Positions 4,027 to 56,042 of a stretch of DNA of 64,000 nt are shown here, piece after piece. A program made the translations under genes and the position numbers. Numbering within the stretch: position 1 is the stretch's first letter; the number at the start of each line of letters is the position of its first letter. Location: assembly GCA_002269645.1 (NCBI GenBank), contig NIVC01000109.1, positions 669,670 to 733,669 of the forward strand, given 5' to 3'. This DNA comes from Macrostomum lignano (Eukaryota). The notes beneath the pieces were generated by a model. It saw nothing but the letters and a program-made list of their open reading frames with translations, searched no databases and was not told the origin of the DNA.

Positions 4027-7000
4027 CACTTGAACCCTCATTTTCCTGGCCGTCTCCAAACACAATGGTCAGGTTGCTGCTGGCCCTGCTGTGGCTGTGC
4101 GAGAGGCCCTGACTGGCCGAGCAGACCAACGTCTGACCGCTGCAGTTTCTGAGTTGGCTGCTCAGCTGGACACTGCGACTGGAGGCCAGCAGCTGCTGGT
4201 TCACTGCGAGTGGAGATGTGACAGGTTTGAGCCAGGTTTGAGTCAGGTTTGAGACAGGTTTGAGCCAAGTTTGAGCCAAGTTTGAGCCAAGTTTGAGACA
4301 GGTTTGAGCCAAGTTTGAGACAGGTTTGAGTCAGGTTTGAGCCAAGTTTAAGCCAAGTTTGAGACAGGTTTGAGCCAAGTTTGAGCCAAGTTTGAGCCAA
4401 GTTTGAGACAGGTTTGAGTCAGGTTTGAGTCAGGTTTGAGCCAAGTTTGAGACAGGTTTGAGTCAGGTTTGAGTCAGGTTTAAGTCAGGTTTGAGTCAGG
4501 TTTGAGTCAGGTTTGAGTCAGGTTTGAGTCAGGTTTGAGTCAGGTTTGAGTCAGGTTCGAGCCAGGTTTGAGTCAGGTTTGAGACAGGTTTGAGTCAGGT
4601 TTGAGTCAGGTTTGAGTCAGGTTCAAGTCAGGTTTGAGTCAGGTTTGAGTCAGGTTTGAGCCAAGTTTGAGACAGGTTTGAGTCAGGTTTGAGCCAGGTT
4701 TGAGCCAAGTTTGAGACAGGTTTGAGCCAGGTTTGAGCCAGGTTTGAGACAGGTTTGAGTCAGGTTTGAGACAAGTTTGAGACAGGTTTGAGACAAGTTT
4801 GAGCCAGGTTTGAGCCAAGTTTGAGACAGGTATAAGCCGAATTTGAGCCAAGTTTGAACCAGGTTTGAGCCAGGTTTGAGCCAGGTTTGAGACAGGTTTG
4901 AGTCAGGTTTGAGACAAGTTTGAGACAAGTTTGAGACAGGTTTGAGACAAGTTTGAGCCAGGTTTGAGCCAAGTTTGAGACAGGTATAAGCCGAATTTGA
5001 GCCAAGTTTGAACCAGGTTTCTCTCTGACTAATTCAAAATATACTCTGTCAGATTATCGTGTCAGGTTAATGTCGCTATCGTGTCCTAATTATGCAACTG
5101 TTTATGTCAAATTTATTGCGTCATGGTGATGTTAGAACGGGTCTGAAACTGACATTGATCTTGTGTGGGAGAAGCGAAGGTCCTCACAGCTCAAGCCTCT
5201 GACAGGCGGCTCAACAGTCGCATCGGTCTTATTCAGCGAGTACATTGTCGGTTGAGGCGAGAAGGAGTTCTCTGACAGCCAATCGACCAGATTCGAGCTG
5301 GTCGCGAGTTCGACTCCGTCCAGGTAGAAAGCCAGCCGAGCAGGCGGGATGACGGCCTCCTTGGTGAAGCACTCGAATCTGTTGGCGCTGGAGTTGCCGC
5401 CATCTGGCAGCAGGGGGTCCCAGCTGACGAGCGCCAGGCTGCTCTGAGGCAGAATCTCTGCAGATTGGTTTTCTTTGTTTTACCAAAGTTTTACCAAATT
5501 ACTACTAATAAGTAGAGTATTTCAGCTCTAAATACTAGGAATCTAGTGACCCCCTCCGGGGCGCTCAATAAGCAAGGGCAAAAATATTCATGAAAATGCA
5601 TTAAAAAAGCACATATTCTTAAGAATCAGTTCCTTCTTCAGTTTTATAAATCACACTGGAGTTCAAAGAAGCAGTACTGGACTGCCCGAAAATGCATATT
5701 AGGAGTGATGAGAGTCGGGACATTTTTCCTAGCTTGCTTTTGCCAAGGACGACTTAAGTAGAAGGACGGGAAACCTCGTTTCTTAGAAAAACCTAGAAGG
5801 CAGGTTTTTCCGAAAAAAATACACTACGGAGATAGGAAGTTTTCATTTTTTCAGCACAAAAATTGCTATTGCTTTTGATAGGAGACAGATCCAGTGTTCA
5901 TCTTTTGATATTTTGTGCCTTTTTTATTGCTCTATCGATATTCATAAGGCTTTTAGTTCAAAGAAGTAGGGTTCTATGTGAATTTTTTATTCTACGTAAA
6001 TTTTTTTTCGGAAAAACCTGCCTTCTAAATTTTTCTAAGAAACGAGGTTTCCCGTCCTTCTACTTAAGTCGTCCTTGGCTTTTGCATTTAAGTTCTCTCA
6101 TGCGGAGCACAGAGCCTGCACTGAACACTGCGAATTGTTGCACCTACTGACTTCGCTTTCACTCAACTGTTACGAGATGCTTACTTCCCTCACCTTTACC
6201 TATAGTCCCAAATTCTTACTTACTGTAATACTGCAGAAATATGCCATCCTCTTGTTCATCCATCAGACTCTTGCAGAACCACGGCCCGATGTGAAGCGGA
6301 TTGAAGCCGCCCACAATGCCAGCGGAGCAGGTGAGAGAGTTGCCGGACTCCCTGCAGGTCAGGTTCGAGCTCTGGTACTGTCCGTCATCAGTGGCGAATT
6401 TCATACTCGAGGGTGTGCAGCCGGCTGGCCCGCTGGCCGAGCTGAACTGGCAGTTGTTGGAGCTCCTCTGAGTCTGTGTGATGCGGAATGCGAGAGTTTG
6501 GGGCTGGCTTATTATATTCATGCACTTCATTAGCCGACAGAGTCATGCGTCGAAGCACTCTCTAAGATCAAGCTCGTAGGAGTGAGAGTCATGCATGGCC
6601 TGACTAACAACAACAACAACAATAGCAACAACAACAACAACAACAACAACAACAGCAACAACAACAACAACAACAACAACAGCAACAACAACAACAGGCA
6701 ACGCCCTTTCTTCGGGCGGCGAAGAGCGCCGGGAATCGGTCACCGCTCCTGGCTCAGGGGCGGTGAGTGTGGCTCGGTCCGGCCCTCTGTGCTCAGCCTT
6801 TGTCGCTGGCTCTGTCAGCGGTAGGGGTTTGGCACCTGGTCCGGTTATTTCGAGCTCGGTCCGCAGTCAACAACAACAACAACAACAACAACAACCACAA
6901 CAACAACAGCAACAGCAACAAAAACAACAACAATCAGCGCCTTGCCAACAGCCACATCCGGCTCCCACCCTGGAACTCGTTGGCCGACGCCAGAGTGCGC

Positions 7001-7885
7001 ATGTTCACTAAGCTGCTGTTCGAGCCACTTGAAACCGACGCCGTCCAGGCGGTCCAAGCCACCACGACCGCGCGCTGCCCGAACGCCGCCACTTACTTCA
7101 CCGACGGATACGTCTCGGGTGGCGTTGAAAACGGAGGTGCGGCCTGGATTCTCTTGAGCCAGGACGGCTCCATCAGCCAGAGCCGCGGTTGGCCGAGGGC
7201 CGCTGGTGCAGCTCCTTTGAGGCTGAACTTATCGCCATCTTCCAGGCGCTAAGCGACATAATTGCCAACCCCCCGACAGAGGCTGCCATTCTCACCGACA
7301 GCCAGAGCGCCATCGCGGTTCTAAAATCCGATCGACCATCAACCAACCCGCTCGTGGAGAGCGTTAAGGAACGCCTTATCACCGCCGCCCGTCGTTCGAA
7401 GATCATCCTGCAGTGGGTGCCCGGGCACGCCGGAATCCCCGGAAACGAACTTGTGGATGCCGAGGCCAAACTAGCGGCCACGCTGCCTCAGGAACATGTC
7501 GGCATCACCCTGGATTCGGCGAGGGCCCGCATCCGACGGGCTGTTAACTACTCGCCCAACATGTCTACGAGTATGGCCAAAAGATTACGATGCATGAGGG
7601 CCCGTGCAGACAACAGGTCCTGGTCTCGCAGGTCCGCGCCGGGCACTGTCCTGCATCAACCTACTACCGCAACCGCATCAGCATTAAGGTCGGGGGCAAC
7701 TGCCGTCTCTGCGCGGAAGAGGTTGATCAGTACCACCCCCTCAACTGCCCGGCCCTGGACGTCCAACGCCGTACTCACGGCATTACCGAAATGTGTCAAC
7801 TCGCTCGTGCAGACGTAGTGGCGCTTCACCTAGGGGCCATCGGTTGGTGTCCCCTTTAGGAGAGGCTCACCGCATTCAACAACAA

Positions 7886-7923
<38 letters not shown>

Positions 7924-10900
7924 GCAACAACAACAGCAACAACGACAACAACAACAATAACAACAACAACAACAACAGCAACAACAAAAACAACAACAAC
8001 AACAGCAATAACAACAGCAACAACAACAACAAGCCGATGGGACACAAGGTGTCCGAGTTTCCGGAGCTCTTCGACACCCGTTGAATTGGGTGCCTTCCCT
8101 CCGCGACGTAGACGCGGCGCCGGGTAGGAGCTGGAACCGTGGCTCCAGGCCGTCCGTAAAGGTCGACGGGTAAACGGGTGCTCCAGTTTCCGGCCCGTCA
8201 GCCTTACGTCCATCTGCGTTAAACTCATGGAGCGGATGGTGCTGGACCGGCTGATGCACTGGCTCGAGACCAACGGCACTCTGCAGCCCTGCCAAGCGGG
8301 CTTTCAACGCGGCTGGAGCTGCGAGGAACAGATTGCCCGCCTCGTGCAAGAAATCCAGGGCGGATGGGAAGGCCCCACTCAAGACTCTGGCAGTCACGCT
8401 CGATTGCTCTAGAGCGTTCGAGAGTGGCGAGCCAAGCTCCTGGCTCGTCTCATGGATGAAGGCCTGCCCGGCCGTATTATTCGCTGGTTTGCCAGCTTTC
8501 TGGAGGGGCGTCAAATCGCCGTGCGTGTCGGCGAGGCAGTCGGCAAGTGGCGCCCCCTACGCGAAGGGGTGCCCCAGAGGGCCGTCAGCTCTCCCATCCT
8601 CTTCCTCCTGTACATTAACGCCTGGCGGGACAAACTGGTCCCCAGGTTTGCTACGGAGGATTCGCTGATGACCTCGGCATTTGGACTACTGGTCGGAACA
8701 CTAACGAGCTGGAATCTCGTATTCAGTCTGCGCTCAACCGCATCGAAGACTGGGCGGCCGACTTGAGAATCGATCTTAACCCCGCCAAATCTGAGTGCTG
8801 TCTCTATACGCGCGATCGGAGCGAGCGAAATCGCCCTCTGAACCTGTCAATCTCTGGCATTCGTCTCCCTACCAAGCGTGGAGTCCGCTACCTCGGCGTC
8901 TGGATAGACGACGGCCTGATCTTTAAGCGCCAGACGGACGAAGTTGTTTCGAAAATGCACCGCCGTTGCAGAATCCTCCGTGCCCTGGCTCACAGAGAGT
9001 GGGGCTGGGACTGCGACACCCTCCGCACTGTCTACAAGGCGGTTGTCGAGTCCGTCGCCTGGCATGCGGCTGCGGCTTGGATGCCATGGCTGCCCAAAAC
9101 CAGGTTAGAGGAGTTAGACCGGGCCCAGTGGTAGGCATTGAGACTTATTACTGGATTGCCGAAGTCAACTCCCTGCAAGGCCGTCTACAAGGAAGCAAAT
9201 TGCGACCCCATTGGTGTCGAGGCCAAGCGGAGAGCCCTCATCGCCGTTGAAAAAGCTAAAAGAAGACCGACCAACGACCCTTGGCGCCAGATTTGCGAGC
9301 GCGAGGCCGACGTCCACCTCAAGGCCAACCGTGGACTCCGGGAGCAAGCGAACAGAATTTTGGCCAATCTCCTTCCGTTCAAGAGGCTTCCGAACTCATG
9401 GATTCGAGCGCCTCCCTGGGAAGCGTTTAACGGTATGGAACGACTTCGCCTCTTTCCGGAACTCGTCAGCCCCTGCAGCAAGTCCGACGACATCCAGGTC
9501 AGGCGCGACCTTTTTCAGGAGACTCGCAGAGCGCGCCTCCCTGACACTTGCTACTAAACTGACGGATCGGCCACTAGCGGCACCCAGCTTGGCGGTGCGG
9601 CCTGGATCCTGTATTGCAGCAGTCAGGACCAGATAATCCGTTCGGGGAGTGCAGCGGCCGGCAGATGGTGCAGTTCCTTCGAAGCTGAGCTCCGTGCCCT
9701 CTCTATGGCCCTGGGTGACATCCTTACGGAGGGTCTGCCAAATGCTGCCATCCTAACCGACAGCCAGGCCGCTATTCGTGCCATCCAAGCCGACTGTCCG
9801 ACTGTACCACCACCGACATCCTGCTCGAGGAGCTCAAGGGCCTCATTCGCAGTGCTACTCGGGTCACAGCTATCACCATACAGTGGATCCCGGGGCACGT
9901 GGGCGTCGACGGCAATGAGCTGGCCGATTGGGAGGCAAAACGGGCCACGGGCCTGCCGCAACAGCACGTTCCGCTAGCGCTAGCCGCGTCCAAGAGTCTG
10001 CTGCGCAGGTCCGTCCGGTACCAGCCCGTCCTGGAGGGACACCTGAAAGATGTCTACTCGGGGAGCCTTACCTGCCACGACGGCCCCAGAAATCAGAAGG
10101 TCCTCGTCTCGCAAGTCCGTGCAGGCCACTGTCCGGCTTCGGCTTATTATAAGAAGCGCATCGGGACGACCGACGAGGCCGCCTGTAGGCTGTGCGGGGA
10201 CGAGGTGACCCAGTTCCATATCCTGATCTGTCCTGCCCTGGACTCGACTCGCCGCATGCACGGAGTGCAAAACCTCAGCGACCTGGCCGATGGTCACGCG
10301 GTGGCGCGGCTCCTGGGTGCCCTCGATTGGGTCCCCATCTGATGGAGCCGCACTCCACACACAACAACAACAAAAACAAAAAAACAACAACAACAACAAC
10401 AACAACGACGACGACGACGACGAGGACGACGACGACAATAATAGCAACAACAACAAAGACGCCGCCCAGAGTAGCAAAGTCCCGAGGTCAGGTTAGGGTT
10501 AGGGTGCAGCTATAAAAGACTCATATTGGGGAATTGCTAAAATTCTGTTGCAAAATGCTAATGTGGGAATTGCTGAGATATCAAGGATCATGGGGTACGA
10601 ATTGCTGAAATGTTGTGGCTCATGGAGATAATTTTTGTGATTTCAAGGCTCAGGGAATTGCTGAGATATAAAGGCTCATATGGGGGGATCGGTGAAGTAC
10701 TTTGGCTCATGGGGGGGGGAATTGTTGAGAGCTGTCAAGGCGCTTATGGGGGCCTGCTCACATGCTTTGACGCCAAAGCTCATAGAGGATCTTATAGGCT
10801 ATACGAGCGTACGTGTAGAAGCTGGCTTTCGGGGCTGATGCTTTTTGTTTTAAACATAACTTTCCTAACAAAACTACGAGTTTAACAACAGCTTGCCTGT

Positions 10901-11345
10901 ACAAGGTCAAAATTGCCACATGTACATGTATTTTATTCAAAATTTTATTCCTGCTCTGTTGCCTCCCTGACGGGGGGGCGCAGATAATCACAGTTACTAA
11001 AAGAAGCCGCACAATATTACAGATAAATATTATTCTCACAGGTGCTTCAACTGCCAAGACAGGATTCTCGTTCGAGCTACTTCGGATCCAACGACAGGCG
11101 AACTGCCAACTCGAAGTGCTCTGCGACATTTCAATGGTGGTCGGGTTCGTGCCGGAGTTTCTGTGGTAAAATGCGCCGCTGATGAGAACCGACGGCTTGG
11201 CTGCCTCTGCGCCTGGTTTCGGTTTATTGGAGATGGAAATTACGGCAATCAATGAACTTTTAACGGTGTTTTTGTACCTGAGTAAACTTGAATCCTAGAG
11301 GTTTATCGTACCTGTCAGCATCAAGCAGCTCAGCAGTAGAAACAT
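4027..11345 (-). CDS. Gene B: paralog of gene A (signal peptide + Ig-like domains), possibly splice-defective or a pseudogene
   Basis: Exons 11345-11312 (MFLLLSCLMLT), 11212-11021, about 6487-6224, 5457-5188, 4203-4027; all phase 1 and open. Aligns with gene A (WQFACRW, CRESGNSLTC, NRFECFTKEAVIPPARLAFYLDG, VNQQLLASSR). The expected acceptor at 6488 reads CAT rather than CAG. The terminal exon was not resolved. Confidence 0.7.
4222..5018. repeat. 11-bp tandem repeat (CAGGTTTGAGT/C)n in an intron of gene B
   Basis: Read directly. Confidence 0.95.
5744..6077. mobile_element. hAT-type MITE, 334 bp
   Basis: About 80-bp terminal inverted repeats (CAAGGACGACTTAAGTAGAAGG... / ...CCTTCTACTTAAGTCGTCCTTG) flanked by an 8-bp direct repeat GCTTTTGC at 5736-5743 and 6078-6085. 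An 8-bp TSD with CA..TG ends is typical of hAT. Confidence 0.85.
6934..7876 (+). mobile_element. 5'-truncated non-LTR retrotransposon (I-group-like; RNase H + C-terminal CCHC region), frameshifted
   Basis: RNase H motifs YFTDG..GGAAW, RWCSSFEAEL, ILTDSQSAI, QWVPGHAGIPGNELVD; C-terminal CRLC..HPLNCPAL; ends in an (AAC)n tail. Confidence 0.9.
8033..10361 (+). mobile_element. 5'-truncated non-LTR retrotransposon (RT + RNase H + CCHC), degenerate; a different family from 6934-7876
   Basis: RT motifs RPVSLTSICVKLMERMV, QAGF, LDCSRAF, EGVPQ..SPILFLLYIN, RYLGVWID; RNase H TDGS..GGAAW, LTDSQAAI, WIPGHVGVDGNELAD; stops and frameshifts; (AAC)n tail. Confidence 0.93.
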
Positions 11346-35080: not shown

Positions 35081-38000
35081 GCGGTGGTCGGTCACGAAAC
35101 GGCGGAGCTGGACGCGTTTGCAAAGATCGCCGACAGCATGCTGGCTGTCGCCGGTTGCGCCACCCCGTTCGCCTCTGTAAACCGCACCTCGCGGCCACCG
35201 GCCAAGAGCACCTGAGACTGAGAGGCAACGCTGGTTCTTTTCGTAACAGGAAGCCCGACGACTCGCTCCAACCGGAACTCACGCCGACGACCCAAGATCT
35301 GCAACGGTCATCTCTACTACGCTGCCGATGCTCGCACCTGTCGACCATGGTGCCAGTGGCCAGGCTCGAAACCGCCGACACTGCTGGCCAGCCGTCAGCC
35401 AACTCCGGTTCAGTCCCGGGCGTCCAGCCCGACGCCAAGCCAGGCGTCAAACTAGTCGGTCATGTGCCTCGGCCGAGCCGCGACCCGTCAAAGGCCACCA
35501 CGTTGCTGCTTCGTTGCCAAGTTCTCCGTGCGCCCGTTTCGTTCATCGTTGACACCGGCGCCGAACGGTCGCTCCTTCCTTTGCAGTTTGTTCCTCAAAA
35601 TCTACTCGTACCCACTTATGTCAAGCTTTGTGGCGTCGAAGGCCGCAAAATCCGAACCTAGACTATACCCTTGCGACGTTCATTGTTACTAGTACTGCGC
35701 CAATCCTCGGTGCAGATTTCTTCCTCAAGCTCGGTCTCCTAATTGACCTGAATTCACGGCGAATTCAAGACCCTGTGACATCTTTGCGTGCGACTCTCTG
35801 TTCTTCTAGTGATTCAGTCCCTCAAATCAACGCCAACACGCTGCTTGAGCCCACCACACCGCTTGCTCGGTTCCCTCGAGTTCTGGAAGCTCCGGACTAC
35901 ACCGCAGCACCCGTCAAGGCCTATCACTTCGTTCCGATGGCAGATGAGGACATCGAGAAGACAGTGCTTTGTACCCCGTTCGGCTCGTTCGAATACCTGC
36001 GGATGCCCTTCAGCCTCCAGAACGCCGCTAGCACGTTTCAGCGATATGTTGACTCCGTGTTTCGGGACCTACCATTTGTTTCTACCTACATCGACGACAT
36101 ACTAGTGCACAGCAGGTCTCGGGAAGAGCACCAAGTACACATTGAAACAGTGCTGCAACGACTTACAGACAAAGGTTTGGGAGTAAATTCGGACAAGTGT
36201 CGGTTTTTCCGCGAGTCTGTAGAGTTTCTCGGCTATCTCGTGTCTGCGGAGGGCATTCGGCCCCTGCCCCACCGTGTCGAGGCCCTCCGACAGCTGCCAC
36301 CTCCTACTGACCACCAGGCCTTGCAGCGCTACCTCGGGATGTTTGGATTTTACCAACGGTGCATCCCTGATTACGCAAAGACCGTCCTACCATTGCGGCA
36401 GCTCGTCTCAATGACATTCGTCTGGACGGAGCACCACGGTCGCGCCTGGAAAGCGCTTCAGAACAGCCTCACGGAAGCGGTCATGCTCGCCTTTCCGCAT
36501 CCCCAGGCTACGTTTACCATCACAACGGACGCCAGCTCGACTGCCATCGGTGGTGCTCTACATCAAGTGGTGGACGGCCAGTCTACACCCCTAGCTTTCT
36601 ACTCGCGGAAACTGTCCGGCACCGAGGCTGCGTACAGCACCTTCGATCGGGAACTCCTCGCCATCGTCGCCGCGGTCAAGGCCTGGAAGCACATGATTCA
36701 AGGCCAGCGGACAACTGTGTTCTGCGACCACAAGCCTATCATCGGAGCCTTCGGCAACAGAAAGGAGCGTTTTTCGGACCGACAGCAACGCCACCTATCC
36801 GTGATCACTGAATTTGTCAGCGACATCGTTCACATTGCCAGTAGGGACAACGTGGTTGCCGATGCACTATCTCGTCCCAACGTCACCTCCGAAGCGCAGC
36901 CACCATCGTCCGTAAGACTGCTAGCTGGCATCCCGCCCTCGGTGGATTTGCCAGCTATCGCGCGAGCCCAGAAAGACAGTCTACCCGCCAACGATCCGCC
37001 AGGAGGCTTGTTCAGCAACTTCGATATCGGAATTAAAGACAACCCATTACGCTATCAGACTTCGCAGACTAACCCGTGTCCCGTAGTTCCTGAAGTACTA
37101 CGATGTGCGGTGTTCAACTCGCTGCATTCGTTCGCACACCCCGGCAGAAAAGCTACGCAACGGCTCATTAGCTATCGTTTTCTTCTGGCCGCTAATGGGT
37201 GCCGACATTCGCAAGTGGGTAGCTGAGTGCCAACAATGCCAGCAGTGCAAGACTGGACGACATGTTCAACGCCCACTGCAGCAGCTGCCTGTGCCATCTC
37301 AGAGATTCACGACGGTACACATTGACCTGGTCGGACCGTTACCGCCTTCTGAGTCTGAAGACCCCTTCACGACGATACACATTGACCTGGTCGGACCGTT
37401 ACCGCCTCCTGAGTCTAAAGACCCCGGCCCGAAGCCTTGCTACCTACTCACCATGATCGATGCCTACTCACGCTGGTTCGAGGCAGCACCGCTTTCGAAC
37501 ACTGCCGCCACATCAGTCGCACGAGCCTTCCTGGAAACCTGGATTTCTCGGTTCGGCCCACCTTTGACGCTGATCAGTGACCAGGGATCCCAATTCCGAG
37601 CGGAGCTCATAAGAGACTTGACGGACCTACTCGGCATCCACCACATCCGCACTTCAACCTATAATCCGAGAGCAAACGTTGTCATCGAACGTGCACACCG
37701 GACGCTGAAGGTCGGTTTGAAGGCGCGCGGCAAGAACTGGCTGCAGCAGCTGCCCGTCGTGCTCCTGGGCATGCGCATTTTCCCAGATGAGTCAGGTGCC
37801 TCTCCGTTTTCCGTTGTTACGGGTGAGCAACCGCTGGTCCGACCAGTCGTCACCGACACTTCTGCGCTCAAGGAGCTCTCGACTAGCCTACATCAGCTTT
37901 TCTTCCCATACCGGCAGCTGAGAACGCGCGAGATAGCCGTGCATCTGCCAGCCGCGCTGAGTTCGTGCACACACGTCTGGTTGCGGTTGGACCGGGTGCG

Positions 38001-38599
38001 ACGACCCCTGGAGGCTCCTTACCAAGGCCCGTACGCGGTACTGGACAGGTACGACACCACAATGATACTCAAGATCAACGGCAAGCCTACCGTAGGTTCG
38101 ATCGATCGTGTCAAGCCGCCACCCTACCAACAGCCCAACAAGAGCAGCCAGCAGCTACACCGGCCCCGCCAAGCGACGCTCCCGCCTCTAACACAAGGTC
38201 GCGCAGCGCAAATGCGTGCGATTCAACAGCGAGACCTCCGTGCAAGTTTTCCAGAAAGACAGTCCACCTAGCAATACCTGAACAGTGTTCATAAACTGAT
38301 CAACCTATGACATCTGCAATGCTTACCTACTCGTTCCCCTGCGCTGTTCGAACTTTTTGTCTCCGATTAGATAATGCATAGTGATGTACTTCATCTAGGA
38401 GGGGGAGTATCTTGTAGCAGTGAGAAACATGAATCAGCTAGCAGCGAGTCCCTTTTGGCCCTAGACGATATTCTTAAGCTGTTCTCGTTACTGTCTCTAA
38501 AATCGAATAAAGCCGAAGTTAGAGCCCGTCAAGGGTTTACAACCGTTCTATCTCACTTCCACAAAACAAATTCCACTGCGTTTTGATTCACTCGCTACA
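35081..38599 (+). mobile_element. Defective Ty3/Gypsy LTR retrotransposon, copy 1 (gag end, PR, partly deleted RT, RH, IN, 3' LTR 38413-38599; no 5' LTR)
   Basis: Gag C..H..Y...A..C.PWC, protease FIVDTGA, RT YIDDIL, RNase H TTDAS/ELLAI, integrase HPG..CQQC, HIDLVGPLP, SDQG, ERAHR; PPT AGGAGGGGGAG; LTR TGTAGC...GCTACA with AATAAA. The gag motif suggests a CsRN1/Kabuki-like lineage (inference). Confidence 0.95.
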
Positions 38600-43009: not shown

Positions 43010-44114
43010 TGAGAAGGCCCAAGCAACCCGAGCAGCGAGTCTCCCCCCCCCCAAATGGGACCCGTCGCACCCAGCAGACCAGCGAGTACCGATCTAGAGA
43101 AGGCGAATCTTTTCTGTCAGATCTACAGCGCCGTCTCCAGGGTCGCAACCAGCCCTAGGGACCGCCCAGTGACCCGACCAGCCAACGAGGTGCTTAAAGA
43201 ACACTGCTGTGACGGGCACGGAGCTCGAAGTGGTATCTGCTCGCCCTTCAGCAACCCGGAGCACTGTAATGCCATCCGCAAGTCTGCAAGGCCCCCGGGC
43301 AGGATGGCGTCACCAATGACATGCTAAAGCACCCCACCCTCCACGGATGACAGGACCCTGTCCATCACTAACCGCTCTTGGCAGAAGGGGGAATGTCCTT
43401 GGCAATGGAAATGAGCCATCATCATTCCGTTCCAAAAAAGGGAAAGGACGCCAGCAAGCCTGACTCCTACCGCCCAGTCGCCCTCACGAGTTGTATAGCC
43501 AAACTGGCAAAGCGGCTGGTCCTCCAGCGTCTCCGCCATGCCCTCGAAACCTCAGGCAAGGGCCGCTCTACGGAGGAATTGATTGCGAGCACCTGTCAGG
43601 AAATTTTCGACAAATTGGAGTCCACCCCGCATCTCCGGTCCATTCTTTGTCTTCTCGACTTCAGCCGCGCCTACGATAGAGTCTGGCGCGCGGCACTGTA
43701 CAAGAAACTGCGGGAACTCGGCGTCCAAAGAGACGTCATCCGCTGGATCCGCGCTTTTCTGACGGATCGCCGAGCCAGAGTGTGCGTGAACAACTGCATT
43801 AGCAAGCATTAGCATTAGCATTAGCATTAGCAATTAGCATTAGCATTAGCATTAGCATTAGCATTAGCATTAGCATTAGCATTAGCATTGGCATTAGCAT
43901 TAGCATTAGCATTAGCATTGGCATTAGCATTAGCATTAGCATTAGCATTAGCATTAGCATTAGCATTAGCATTAGCAAGGAGCGCATCTTCCACGAGGGC
44001 CTACCACAGGGTAGCGTTCTCGCCCCCACCCTCTGACTGGTGTATATTAATGACCTGGCAACCGCTGTGTCCGCGAAGTCAACAGAATGCTCACTGAAGC
44101 TGTATGCCGATTTT
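43010..44114 (+). mobile_element. Internal fragment of a non-LTR retrotransposon RT (I-group-like), truncated at both ends
   Basis: KPDSYRPVALTSCIAKL, LDFSRAYDRVW, IRWIRAFLTDR, EGLPQGSVLAP, YINDL, ending at KLYAD; no tail. Confidence 0.9.
43798..43979. repeat. (CATTAG/TTAGCA)n array of about 28 units inside the RT coding sequence, bounded by a 9-bp direct repeat ATTAGCAAG
   Basis: ATTAGCAAG at 43798-43806 and 43971-43979; removing one copy plus the array restores the frame NCISKERIF. Confidence 0.9.
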
Positions 44115-51955: not shown

Positions 51956-54900
51956 GCGGTGGTCGGTCACGAAACGGCGGAGCTGGACGCGTTTGCAAAG
52001 ATCGCCGACAGCATGCTGACTGTCGCCGGTTGCGCCACCCCGTTCGCCTCTGTAAACCGCACCTCGGCCACCGGCCAAGAGCACCTGAGAGGCAACGCTG
52101 GTTCTTTTCGTAACAGGAAGCCCGACGACTCGCGCTCCAACCGGAACTCACGCCGACGACCCAAGATCTGCAACGGTCATCTCTACTACGCTGCCGATGC
52201 TCGCACCTGTCGACCATGGTGCCAGTGGCCAGGCTCGAAACCGCCGACACTGCTGGCCAGCCGTCAGCCCACTCCGGTTCAGTCCCGGGCGTCCAGCCCG
52301 ACGCCAAGCCAGGCGTCAAACTAGTCGGTCATGTGCCTCGGCCGAGCCGCGACCCGTCAAAGGCCACCACGTTGCTGCTTCGTTGCCAAGTTCTCCGTGC
52401 GCCCGTTTCGTTCATCGTTGACACCGGCGCCGAACGCGGTCGCTCCTTCCTTTGCAGTTTGTTCCTCAAAATCTACTCGTACCCACTTATGTCAAGCTTT
52501 GTGGCGTCGAAGGCCGCAAAATCCGAACCTAGACTATACCCTTGCGACGTTCATTGTTACTAGTACTGCGCCAATCCTCGGTGCAGATTTCTTCCTCAAG
52601 CTCGGTCTCCTAATTGACCTGAATTCACGGCGAATTCAAGACCCTGTGACATCTTTGCGTGCGACTCTCTATTCTTCTAGTGATTCAGTCCCTCAAATAA
52701 ACGCCAACACGCTGCTTGAGCCCACCACACCGCTTGTTCGGTTCCCTCGAGTTCTGGAAGCTCCGGACTACACCGCAGCACCCGCCACGTCGGTTCGGCA
52801 TCGTTTTGAGACCACTGGGGAGCGCATTTTTTGTCGACCGCGACCGCTTGCCCCTGCCAAGTTCGCGGTTGCAAAAGCGGAGTTCGACAAGCTCCTGCGC
52901 CTTGGCATCGTCCGCCCCTCCGCCAGTCTGTCGGCCTCCCCGCTTCACATGGTGAAGAAAAAGGACGGCTCCTGGAGACCTTGCGGAGACTATCGAGCCT
53001 TAAACACGGCAACCAAGCCAGACCGCTACCCTATTTCTAACATCAACCATTTCCATCATCAGCTGCACGGTGCGAAAGTTTTCAGCACCCTTGACCTCGT
53101 CAAGGCCTATCACTTCGTTCCGATGGCAGATGAGGACATCGAGAAGACGGTGCTTTGTACCCCGTTCGGCTCGTTCGAATACCTGCGGATGCCCTTCAGC
53201 CTCCAGAACGCCGCTAGCACGTTTCAGCGATTTGTTGACTCCGTGTTTCGGGACCTACCATTTGTTTCTACCTACATCGACGACATACTAGTGCACATCA
53301 GGTCTCGGGAAGAGCACCAAGTACACATTGAAACAGTGCTGCAACGACTTACAGACAAAGGTTTGGGAGTAAATTCGGACAAGTGTCGGTTTTTCCGCGA
53401 GTCTGTAGAGTTTCTCGGCTATCTCGTGTCTGCGGAGGGCATTCGGCCCCTGCCCCACCGTGTCGAGGCCCTCCGACAGCTGCCACCTCCTACTGACCAC
53501 CAGGCCTTGCAGCGCTACCTCGGGATGTTTGGATTTTACCAACGGTGCATCCCTGATTACGCAAAGACCGTCCTACCATTGCGGCAGCTCGTCTCAATGA
53601 CATTCGTCTGGACGGAGCACCACGGTCGCGCCTGGAAAGCGCTTCAGAACAGCCTCACGGAAGCGGTCACGCTCGCCTTTCCGCATCCCCAGGCTACGTT
53701 TACCATCACAACGGACGCCAGCTCGACTGCCATCGGTGGTGCTCTACATCAAGTGGTGGACGGCCAGTCTACACCCCTAGCTTTCTACTCGCGGAAACTG
53801 TCCGGCACCGAGGCTGCGTACAGCACCTTCGATCGGGAACTCCTCGCCATCGTCGCCGCGGTCAAGGCCTGGAAGCACATGATTCAAGGCCAGCGGACAA
53901 CTGTGTTCTGCGACCACAAGCCTATCATCGGAGCCTTCGGCAACAGAAAGGAGCGTTTTTCGGACCGACAGCAACGCCACCTATCCGTGATCACTGAATT
54001 TGTCAGCGACATCGTTCACATTGCCAGTAGGGACAACGTGGTTGCCGATGCACTATCTCGACCCAACGTCACCTCCGAAGCGCAGCCACCATCGTCCGTA
54101 AGACTGCTAGCTGACATCCCGCCCTCGGTGGATTTGCCAGCTATCGCGCGAGCCCAGAAAGACTGTCTACCCGCCAACGATCCGCCAGGAGGCTTGTTCA
54201 GCAACTTTGATATCGGAATTAAAGACAACCCATTACGCTGTCAGACTTCGCAGACTAACCCGTGTCCCGTAGTTCCTGAAGTACTACGATGTGCGGTGTT
54301 CAACTCGCTGCATTCGTTCGCACACCCCGGCAGAAAAGCTACGCAACGGCTCATTAGCTATCGTTTCTTCTGGCCGCTAATGGGTGCCGACATTCGCAAG
54401 TGGGTAGCCGAGTGCCAACAATGCCAGCAGTGCAAGACTGGACGACATGTTCAACGCCCACTGCAGCAGCTGCCTGTGCCATCTCAGAGATTCACGACGG
54501 TACACATTGACCTGGTCGGACCGTTACCGCCTCCTGAGTCTGAAGACCCCTTCACGACGATACACATTGACCTGGTCGGACCGTTACCGCCTCCTGAGTC
54601 TGAAGACCCCTTCACGACGATACACATTGACCTGGTCGGACCGTTACCGCCTCCTGAGTCTAAAGACCCCGGCCCGAAGCCTTGCTACCTACTCACCATG
54701 ATCGATGCCTACTCACGCTGGTTCGAGGCAGCACCGCTTTCGAACACTGCCGCCACATCAGTCGCACGAGCCTTCCTGGAAACCTGGATTTCTCGGTTCG
54801 GCCCACCTTTGACGATGAACAGTGACCAGGGATCCCAATTCCGAGCGGAGCTCATAAGAAACTTGACGGACCTACTCGGCATCCACCACATCCGCACTTC

Positions 54901-56042
54901 AGCCTATAATCCGAGAGCAAACGTTGTCATCGAACGTGCACACCGGACGCTGAAGGTCGGTTTGAAGGCGCGCGGCAAGAACTGGCTGCAGCAGCTGCCC
55001 GTCGTGCTCCTGGGCATGCGCATTTTCCCAGATGAGTCAGGTGCCTCTCCGTTTTCCGTTGTTACGGGTGAGCAACCGCTGGTCCGACCAGTCGTCACCG
55101 ACACTTCTGCGCTCAAGGAGCTCTCGACTAGCCTACATCAGCTTTTCTTCCCATACCGGCAGCTGAGAACGCGCGAGATAGCCGTGCATCTGCCAGCCGC
55201 GCTGAGTTCGTGCACACACGTCTGGTTGCGGTTGGACCGGGTGCGACGACCCCTGGAGGCTCCTTACCAAGGCCCGTACGCGGTACTGGACAGGTACGAC
55301 ACCACAATGATACTCAAGATCAACGGCAAGCCTACCGTAGGTTCGATCGATCGTGTCAAGCCCGCCACCCTACCAACAGCCCAACAAGAGCAGCCAGCAG
55401 CTACACCGGCCCCGCCAAGCGACGCTCCCGCCTCTAACACAAGGTCGCGCAGCGCAAATGCGTGCGATTCAACAGCGAGACCTCCGTGCAAGTTTTCCAG
55501 AAAGACAGTCCACCTAGCAATACCTGAACAGTGTTCATAAACTGATCAACCTATGACATCTGCAATGCTTACCTACTCGTTCCCCTGCGCTGTTCGAACT
55601 TACTGGGCCGTATGCAGAAAGCTCTGTCTAGGGTAGTCCGGTCTTGAAAAGCTAGTCTGGACTTGGATTTGGTATGCAGAAACACAAAGTTAGACCGGTC
55701 TACTATAGACAGAACTAGGGTAGCTGGACCATAGACTATTGACTGAACTACCCAAGTCCGGACTAGCTAGTCTGGACTAAGCTTTCTGAATACGGCCCTT
55801 TGTCTCCGATTAGATAATGCATAGTGATGTACTTCATCTAGGAGGGGGAGTATCTTGTAGCAGTGAGAAGCATTAATCAGCTAGCAGCGAGTCCCTTTTG
55901 GCCCTAGACGATATTCTTAAGCTGTTCTCGTTACTGTCTCTAAAATCGAATAAAGCCGAAGTTAGAGCCCGTCAAGGGTTTACAACCGTTCTATCTCACT
56001 TCCACAAAACAAATTCCACTGCGTTTTGATTCACTCGCTACA
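51956..56042 (+). mobile_element. Defective Ty3/Gypsy LTR retrotransposon, copy 2 (long pol frame; 3' LTR 55856-56042; no 5' LTR)
   Basis: The ORF 52331-55540 carries complete RT (WRPCGDYRALN, YIDD), RNase H and integrase motifs. The protease region is frameshifted or deleted. PPT and a 187-bp LTR TGTAGC...GCTACA are present. Confidence 0.96.
55605..55798. mobile_element. 194-bp MITE (Harbinger-like termini) inserted in the Gypsy 3' UTR
   Basis: TIR GGGCCGTATGCAGAAAGCT / AGCTTTCTGAATACGGCCC (18/19 match). Absent from copy 1 at about 38355. The TSD is not clean, so the superfamily is tentative. Confidence 0.8.

Follow-up and report, generated by a model that had tools for sequence, protein, structure and literature searches.

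Different I-like retrotransposons stacked head to tail between (AAC)n tracts in an intron of Macrostomum lignano

The stretch of Macrostomum lignano DNA analyzed here (contig NIVC01000109.1 of assembly GCA_002269645.1, 64,000 nucleotides, hereafter the window) holds within a single intron a stack of units that lie head to tail and are joined by tracts of the trinucleotide AAC. Two of these units are the remains of long interspersed nuclear elements (LINEs) of an I-like type, that is, RNase H-bearing retrotransposons without long terminal repeats (LTRs), and they belong to different families; the third is short and non-coding. In this study, we describe the anatomy of the stack and the 3' tail that its members have in common with distant relatives, and we weigh a facultative preference for existing AAC tracts against other ways in which such an array could have been formed.

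The intron, its AAC tracts and the units between them

The host gene is the second of two tandem paralogs (UniProt A0A1I8IE56 and A0A1I8IDH9), which are lineage-specific, annotated as Ig-like/CUB, and without any Pfam domain detected. Exon peptides of two UniProt models from Macrostomum lignano were mapped to the window: P0034 (CUB annotated) matches exactly, and P0033 (Ig-like annotated) is 95% identical to our rough exon joining, with exact peptide matches. The exon upstream of the intron was located by tblastx, the next exon starts at 6473, and canonical GT and AG dinucleotides can be read from the sequence at the two ends of the intron. The intron is 4,563 bp long and the stack accounts for 3,851 bp of it (84%), whereas the equivalent intron of the first paralog (2265-2477) has only 213 bp. 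All of the stacked elements are antisense to the host gene. An intronic location had been claimed in an earlier, first-pass annotation of this DNA, and the comparison of the paralogs together with the UniProt models bears it out; that the intron serves as a "safe haven," as the same annotation had it, is an interpretation. The UniProt model of the second paralog begins exactly at the exon beside the stack, and it may be that the gene prediction was disrupted by the growth of this intron.

Table 1. Coordinates of the stack, its host gene and other features of the window
Feature	Position	Strand	Description
Segment 1 of the first-pass annotation	6535-6605	.	no sign of a transposable element
Tract T1	6606-6696	+	30 units, 90% match; (AAC)5 AAT AGC (AAC)9 AGC (AAC)8 AGC (AAC)4
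Segment 2	6697-6867	+	171 nt, GC 0.66, non-coding, strongly structured
Tract T2	6868-6933	+	22 units; pure (AAC)9 beside the 3' end of segment 2, then interrupted (CAC, AGC twice, AAA)
Segment 3	6934-7876	+	5'-truncated dead I-like LINE, family A: linker, RNase H, C-terminal HC..C..C..H..C motif
Tract T3	7877-8032	+	52 units; 1 interruption in the first 15 units, 10 in the other 37
Segment 4	8033-10360	+	5'-truncated dead I-like LINE, family B: reverse transcriptase, RNase H, CCHC
Tract T4	10361-10456	+	32 units, compound AAC/GAC, tail of segment 4; (AAC)n (GAC)5 GAG (GAC)4 AAT AAT AGC (AAC)3
Host intron	6474-11036	-	GT..AG, in the second tandem paralog of the Ig-like/CUB-annotated gene
Upstream exon, paralog 2	11037-11217	-
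Tandem paralogs 1 and 2	1400-2640; 5260-11217	-
Telomere-type 15-mer	10491-10505		exact (TTAGGG)2.5
Inverted repeat	5742-5819; 6002-6079		78 bp, 97% identity
I-like fragment	43040-44110	+	pre-RT and reverse transcriptase only, both ends truncated; 33-43% amino acid identity to P0001 and P0003
(GCATTA)30 microsatellite	43796-43977
Segmental duplication	~28.3-41 kb; 45.9-64 kb		tandem, ~17.6 kb
LTR-retrotransposon pol regions	52331-55540; 35628-38271		one ORF of 1069 amino acids; split into two ORFs

Tandem Repeats Finder, run on the whole window, detected four imperfect period-3 AAC/CAA arrays, all of them at this locus (Table 1). A regular-expression scan of the same 64 kb found no other (AAC)≥4 outside the four tracts and no (GTT)≥3, and the sole further AAC matches are two (AAC)3, both within a duplicated segment. 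Since the window has its only (AAC)≥4 runs here, the tracts belong to the locus and not to the background. The sequence between the tracts is also set apart by its GC content, 0.61-0.66 compared with 0.44-0.49 in the flanks. Each of the three supported units begins flush with the tract that precedes it, and all three have the same orientation relative to the AAC strand; both points agree with the earlier description. T2 and T3 are nearly pure next to the 3' end of the element on their left and interrupted further away, the distal interruptions of T3 being AGC (five times), AAT (twice), AAA, GAC and others. Taking the two tracts together, interruptions affect 1/24 units near the element 3' end and 15/49 distal units (Fisher p = 0.014, with the near/distal split chosen post hoc). 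T1 is a microsatellite that was there beforehand, or else the tail left by a first insert that is no longer recognizable. A poly-glutamine coding origin for these CAA/CAG-like tracts was considered and dropped, because the tracts hold interruptions that create stop codons and are intronic and antisense to the gene.

Segments 3 and 4 are the coding members. Segment 3 gives a Pfam match to RNase_H (PF00075, E = 7e-15), whereas segment 4, whose 5' end lies about 50 amino acids upstream of the FRPVSLT motif, matches both RVT_1 (PF00078, E = 2.6e-16) and RNase_H (PF00075, E = 6e-12). With these domains and the Cys/His motif at the C-terminus, the I-like type proposed earlier is upheld; the label rests on domain order and the 3' end, and as used here it covers I, Nimb, Ingi, LOA, R1 and Tad1 without telling them apart. 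Both copies are dead. Segment 3 has two frameshifts, near 7186-7192 and 7554-7590 according to the tblastn frames and the translations, and segment 4 has at least two frame changes (near 8631-8646 and 9806-9824) and three in-frame stops (near 8409, 9132 and 9555). Their 3' ends are nevertheless complete: the coding sequence of segment 3 closes with TAG at 7857-7859 and a 17-nt 3' untranslated region (UTR), that of segment 4 with TGA at 10340-10342 and an 18-nt 3' UTR, and in each case the tract follows at once. The APE endonuclease is missing from these two 5'-truncated copies and present in the relatives P0001, P0004 and P0006 (PF03372, PF14529).

The two coding segments represent different families of one RNase H-bearing, I-like clade, as had been supposed. 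They show 51% amino acid identity over the C-terminal 250 residues, and at the nucleotide level similarity is confined to two short patches of 68-69% identity. H190, C191, C209, C212, H220 and C224 are invariant in the alignment of the C-terminal region. In protein searches the best named relative of segment 4 is a reverse transcriptase of Macrostomum lignano (60% identity), and full-length relatives align with it at 42% identity over 98-100% of the query; the search with segment 3 gave no match above 34% identity. A PDB search aimed at clade placement returned L1 ORF2p as sole match.

The non-coding segment 2 is credible as a retroposed unit that uses the same 3' signature as the coding segments, because it folds exceptionally well and its 3' end is nearly identical to that of segment 3. 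Its fold energy is -90.1 kcal/mol (z = -3.8), and none of 200 shuffled sequences was as stable. The unit closes with CCGCAGT followed by (CAA)n; its 3' end, CCGCAGTCAACAAC, differs by one mismatch from CCGCATTCAACAAC of segment 3, and the string CCGCAKTCAACAAC is common to both. No protein similarity was found for it, nor any nucleotide similarity to a fetched relative locus. We also considered a known RNA or a short interspersed nuclear element (SINE) derived from tRNA: Rfam gave spurious matches below threshold and ARAGORN none, and neither program found a pol III promoter or a tRNA-like head. Segment 2, known from one copy, is a candidate for a SINE-like non-autonomous partner or for the long 3' UTR of a third family.

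The first-pass annotation had counted at least four segments, the leftmost being 6535-6605 (segment 1). The four AAC tracts stand, and so do three retroposed units, whereas segment 1 gives no sign of an element. It shows no similarity to any element in BLAST, tblastx or blastx searches, it is without the CCGC 3' signature that segments 2, 3 and 4 share, its GC content is intron-like (0.49, compared with 0.61-0.66 in segments 2-4), and it forms no target site duplication (TSD) with the right flank of the stack. For these reasons we treat it as intron and count three stack members, not four; most likely the intron simply runs on here up to T1, and at most this is an extreme 5' truncation beyond recognition.

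The tail and the 3' signature in relatives

For comparison we used full-length elements in environmental contigs, obtained by protein searches, and 74 loci from a metagenome scan. The full-length relatives carry APE endonuclease, reverse transcriptase and RNase H, and members of the clade occur widely in metagenome contigs of marine and sediment origin; scans of genome and viral contig collections found no relatives. A common layout is seen, in which the stop of the open reading frame (ORF) is followed by a UTR of 3-18 nt and then by (CAA)4-9. Such a tail is present in L001, L002, L003, L006, L011, L019, L031, L032, L054-58, L060, L068 and L081, and L082 has a degenerate (CAA)n version. The AAC/CAA tract is thus the elements' own 3' tail, common across families and recurring in about 14 distant relatives, and the common tail proposed in the first-pass annotation is confirmed. 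Other repeats take its place in more distant members, namely (TAA)n in L005, L013 and L021 and (AGA/AAG)n in L007, L009, L010, L033, L053 and L072, with (GA)n, (AC)n and (ACC)n tails in further distant members.

The tail is often preceded by the short motif CCGC, which lies 0-12 nt ahead of it in segments 2, 3 and 4 and in L001, L002, L003 and L019. The background frequency of CCGC per 16-nt window is 0.7-1.6% in the AT-rich L001-L003 and 8-14% in the copies of the window. We take CCGC-N(0-11)-(CAA)n as the common 3' signature of a subclade. A conserved 3' hairpin with CCGC at its end had been suggested by individual folds; when eight 3' ends were aligned with MAFFT and folded jointly with RNAalifold, no pairs emerged in the consensus, and hence no 3' structure is claimed.

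Two further features of the relatives may be recorded here. A Cys-rich, PHD-like zinc-finger stretch (for example ...WRCxxC...) lies upstream of the endonuclease in L001 (1-180), L080 (1-120) and L012 (1-360), where it either closes ORF1 or opens ORF2. A single called ORF in L081 joins an I-like LINE to the reverse transcriptase and integrase domains of an LTR element.

How the stack may have been assembled

Several non-LTR elements are known to insert into microsatellites, and pairing between tail and target occurs in target-primed reverse transcription (TPRT) (PMC3812793, PMC3547029). UAA repeats are needed for the correct initiation of reverse transcription in the I factor, and the tail repeats of UnaL2 take part in slippage (PMC3747384). 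Our best reading of the stack, to which we give an even balance of belief and doubt, is a facultative insertion into existing AAC tracts that is primed by tail homology, in other words a preference and not a strict site specificity. During TPRT the (CAA/AAC)n tail of the RNA would pair with the (GTT)n bottom strand, so that any (AAC)n tract already in place, be it a microsatellite of the genome or a tail left by an older copy, would be a favored priming site. This site would also set the orientation of the new copy, which would join the downstream repeat seamlessly; and as each new copy leaves a fresh tail, the tract would be regenerated and the stack would grow from head to tail. The anatomy, the difference between the families, the conserved tail with its CCGC motif, the place in the intron and the ordinary insertions of relatives are shown by the data; we infer the tail annealing, the serial order and the preference alike. 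In favor of the preference are the common orientation of the three units, their flush junctions and the absence of further long AAC tracts from the window. The pure-then-interrupted pattern of T2 and T3 is what one would expect where a fresh tail meets what is left of an older target, and the compound microsatellite T4 is likely the oldest such remainder. A broader version, in which the distinct I-like families and the 171-nt partner would make up a guild that has CCGC-(CAA)n in common, homes to (AAC)n by tail-target pairing and seeds mixed arrays, is put forward tentatively and we regard it as rather doubtful.

A number of observations weigh against such a preference. The evidence from M. lignano families comes from a single locus, and the purity polarity along T2 and T3 is a weak argument, made post hoc. 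Disabling lesions have a similar density in segments 3 and 4 (~2-3 per kb), which fits a single event too. No TSD was found when the flank on the left of the stack (6470-6605) was compared with that on the right (10457-10560), the best local alignment scoring 12 and shuffled controls 14.5 on average; none is expected inside a microsatellite, and a duplication of AAC units would escape detection. The I-like fragment at 43 kb in the same window has no AAC tract. Among the relatives, the (CAA)n tails are short and mostly give way to unique DNA; a clean 10-bp TSD, ACTTATTATA, flanks L068 in AT-rich DNA, with a similar one probable for L031; L002 and L003, both truncated, have 5' flanks other than AAC; and L006 has a related element of inverted orientation directly behind its tail. 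What the first-pass annotation had named as the outcome that would speak against its view, random flanks with ordinary TSDs, is therefore what the distant relatives present. Other findings in relatives count in favor of a preference. Sequence of CAA/CAG-like type lies directly 3' of the tail in 4/12 (CAA)n-tailed relatives (L003, L019, L032 and L054). Tandem arrays elsewhere, for which the first-pass annotation had proposed to look, are represented by heterologous head-to-tail pairs in two relatives: in L012 (3960-4320) a full-length element is followed by (ACC)7 and, within at most 50 bp, by a different 5'-truncated element, and in L072 (800-1260) an (AAG)5 tail abuts the AGAAAG-rich, A/G-rich sequence of another LINE.

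The rival that survives best is a single TPRT event with serial template switching, in which segments 4, 3 and 2 were copied in that order into one continuous cDNA concatemer, the enzyme passing each time from the (broken) 5' end of one RNA to a further RNA, recognized by its CCGC-(CAA)n 3' end. The R2 reverse transcriptase is well known to jump from one template RNA to the next, and chimeric retrocopies of L1 are known. A concatemer would account for the fact that every unit is 5'-truncated yet has a complete 3' end and a tail, as well as for the uniform orientation, the flush junctions and the similar lesion density of segments 3 and 4. With CCGC-(CAA)n in common, RNAs of different families would be well suited as acceptors, and the pair in L012 could be a like product. 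Repeated independent insertion, as claimed in the first-pass annotation, is indeed indistinguishable at this locus from one concatemeric event. Three features count against a concatemer: the tracts between units run to 22-52 units with many interruptions, compared with 4-9 units in the tails of relatives; template switching does not predict that T2 and T3 should be pure at first and interrupted farther on; and no TSD pair was found around the whole block, though such a pair could not be seen inside a microsatellite. The length, the interruptions and the polarity of the tracts weigh mildly against this rival, which we consider unlikely.

Strict specificity for (AAC)n, with an endonuclease that cuts the microsatellite in the manner of Waldo, Dong or Koshi and tandem arrays as the normal state, has some appeal in that microsatellite-specific LINEs of the APE type exist (PMC3812793), three of the four I-like copies of the window lie in the AAC stack, and their orientation is fixed. 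In addition, the phase in which a tract meets the next 5' junction is ...AACAA for three of the four. This phase was considered as a sign of specific cleavage and dropped, because AAC(AAC)nAA is reported to be the commonest form among such arrays in general (PMC3547029), so it is little informative. Strict specificity is not supported, since the relatives lie mostly in unique or AT-rich DNA behind short tails, one of them with its clean 10-bp TSD outside any microsatellite, and the fourth I-like fragment of the window stands away from AAC tracts. A target specificity comparable to that of Waldo and Koshi, which the first-pass annotation had cited, lacks support on the same grounds, and we judge this account quite improbable.

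Least probable of all is a chance co-occurrence, an ectopic exchange between AAC tails or a misassembly through microsatellites, for which the abundant minisatellites and the segmental duplication of the window in a repeat-rich neopolyploid genome could be cited: for random insertion it would be highly improbable to give three co-oriented junctions, all of them flush, in a space of 3.9 kb, given that each target measures ~100 bp (by our own estimate) in a genome of 500-760 Mb (PMC5730564), recombination between tails needs an AAC tract already 5' of each partner, the two intron flanks belong to one gene with its exons in correct order, and like pairs occur in independent metagenome contigs.

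Several known systems resemble the stack in part. The I factor has the same ORF2 order of APE endonuclease (here seen in relatives), reverse transcriptase, RNase H and C-terminal Cys/His motif, and likewise ends in a short tandem trinucleotide, which is (TAA)n in the I factor as in L005; the tail described here differs in being CAA/AAC with CCGC ahead of it. We know of no heterologous stacks formed by the I factor. Copies of Waldo, Mino, Kibi, Koshi and Dong lie inside the microsatellites (ACAY)n, (AC)n, (TC)n, (TTC)n and (TAA)n, respectively (PMC3812793), in fixed orientation to the repeat strand, and head-to-tail insertion is possible for them as the target regenerates. Unlike these elements, the stack has several families and a non-coding unit at one site, and any preference it reflects appears facultative and driven by the tail rather than determined by the endonuclease, with relatives inserting outside microsatellites and making ordinary TSDs. 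(AAC)n is absent from the microsatellite targets of LINEs listed in PMC3812793, and we found no description of LINEs with (AAC)n/(CAA)n tails or targets in the searchable literature, a search that did not extend to Repbase-type catalogues.

Nests of co-oriented elements are built by Zepp in Chlorella/Coccomyxa, where 5'-truncated copies lie beside earlier ones (PMC3446292), and mixed-family head-to-tail arrays are formed by HeT-A/TART/TAHRE at Drosophila telomeres (PMC5537684). The present array is likewise co-oriented and head to tail, with three units of different families joined solely by their tails. It differs from both in that it is only 3.9 kb long and interstitial, within an intron and not at a chromosome end or centromere, has (AAC)n joints in place of poly(A), and suggests no host function. 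The closest parallel for segment 2 is the eel LINE UnaL2 and its SINE, in which a short conserved 3' element and (TGTAA)n tail repeats are common to the LINE and its non-coding partner and the tail is involved in slippage and priming (PMC3747384). In our case, mobilization of segment 2 by the neighboring LINEs is a proposal drawn from one copy, with no conserved 3' hairpin demonstrable and neither a pol III promoter nor a tRNA-like head.

Overall, the locus is a small extension of known LINE behavior, and homing itself is not proven. If the preference for AAC tracts is true, the choice of target would be set mainly by the pairing of RNA tail and target and not by the endonuclease, and the preference would be common to different families, possibly with a SINE-like passenger, by way of their shared 3' signature. 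This would give LINEs a simple means of making microsatellite landing pads for themselves and afterwards using them; in a genome rich in repeats, LINEs and microsatellites could in this way promote each other's amplification. The guild, if real, would be the first one of retroposons that home to (AAC)n, and it could add to the unusual simple-repeat load of this genome. If the preference is false, the locus would be an ordinary graveyard of transposable elements in an intron. The CCGC-(CAA)n signature can serve as a handle for annotating the clade in flatworm and meiofaunal genomes.

Surroundings of the stack

Within the host intron, 35 bp to the right of the stack, there is an exact telomere-type 15-mer, which is too long for chance in 64 kb. 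A neighboring intron holds an inverted repeat with arms 180 bp apart, which could be a hairpin of the miniature inverted-repeat transposable element (MITE) type. The I-like fragment farther along the window contains a microsatellite that has expanded within its reading frame. Matching minisatellites at a constant offset reveal a tandem segmental duplication, each copy of which includes the pol region of an LTR retrotransposon, as a single ORF in one copy and split in the other. Minisatellites are frequent throughout the window, with more than 20 arrays of 10-35 nt periods and up to 1.2 kb in length, several of which have units that contain CCCC/GGGG.

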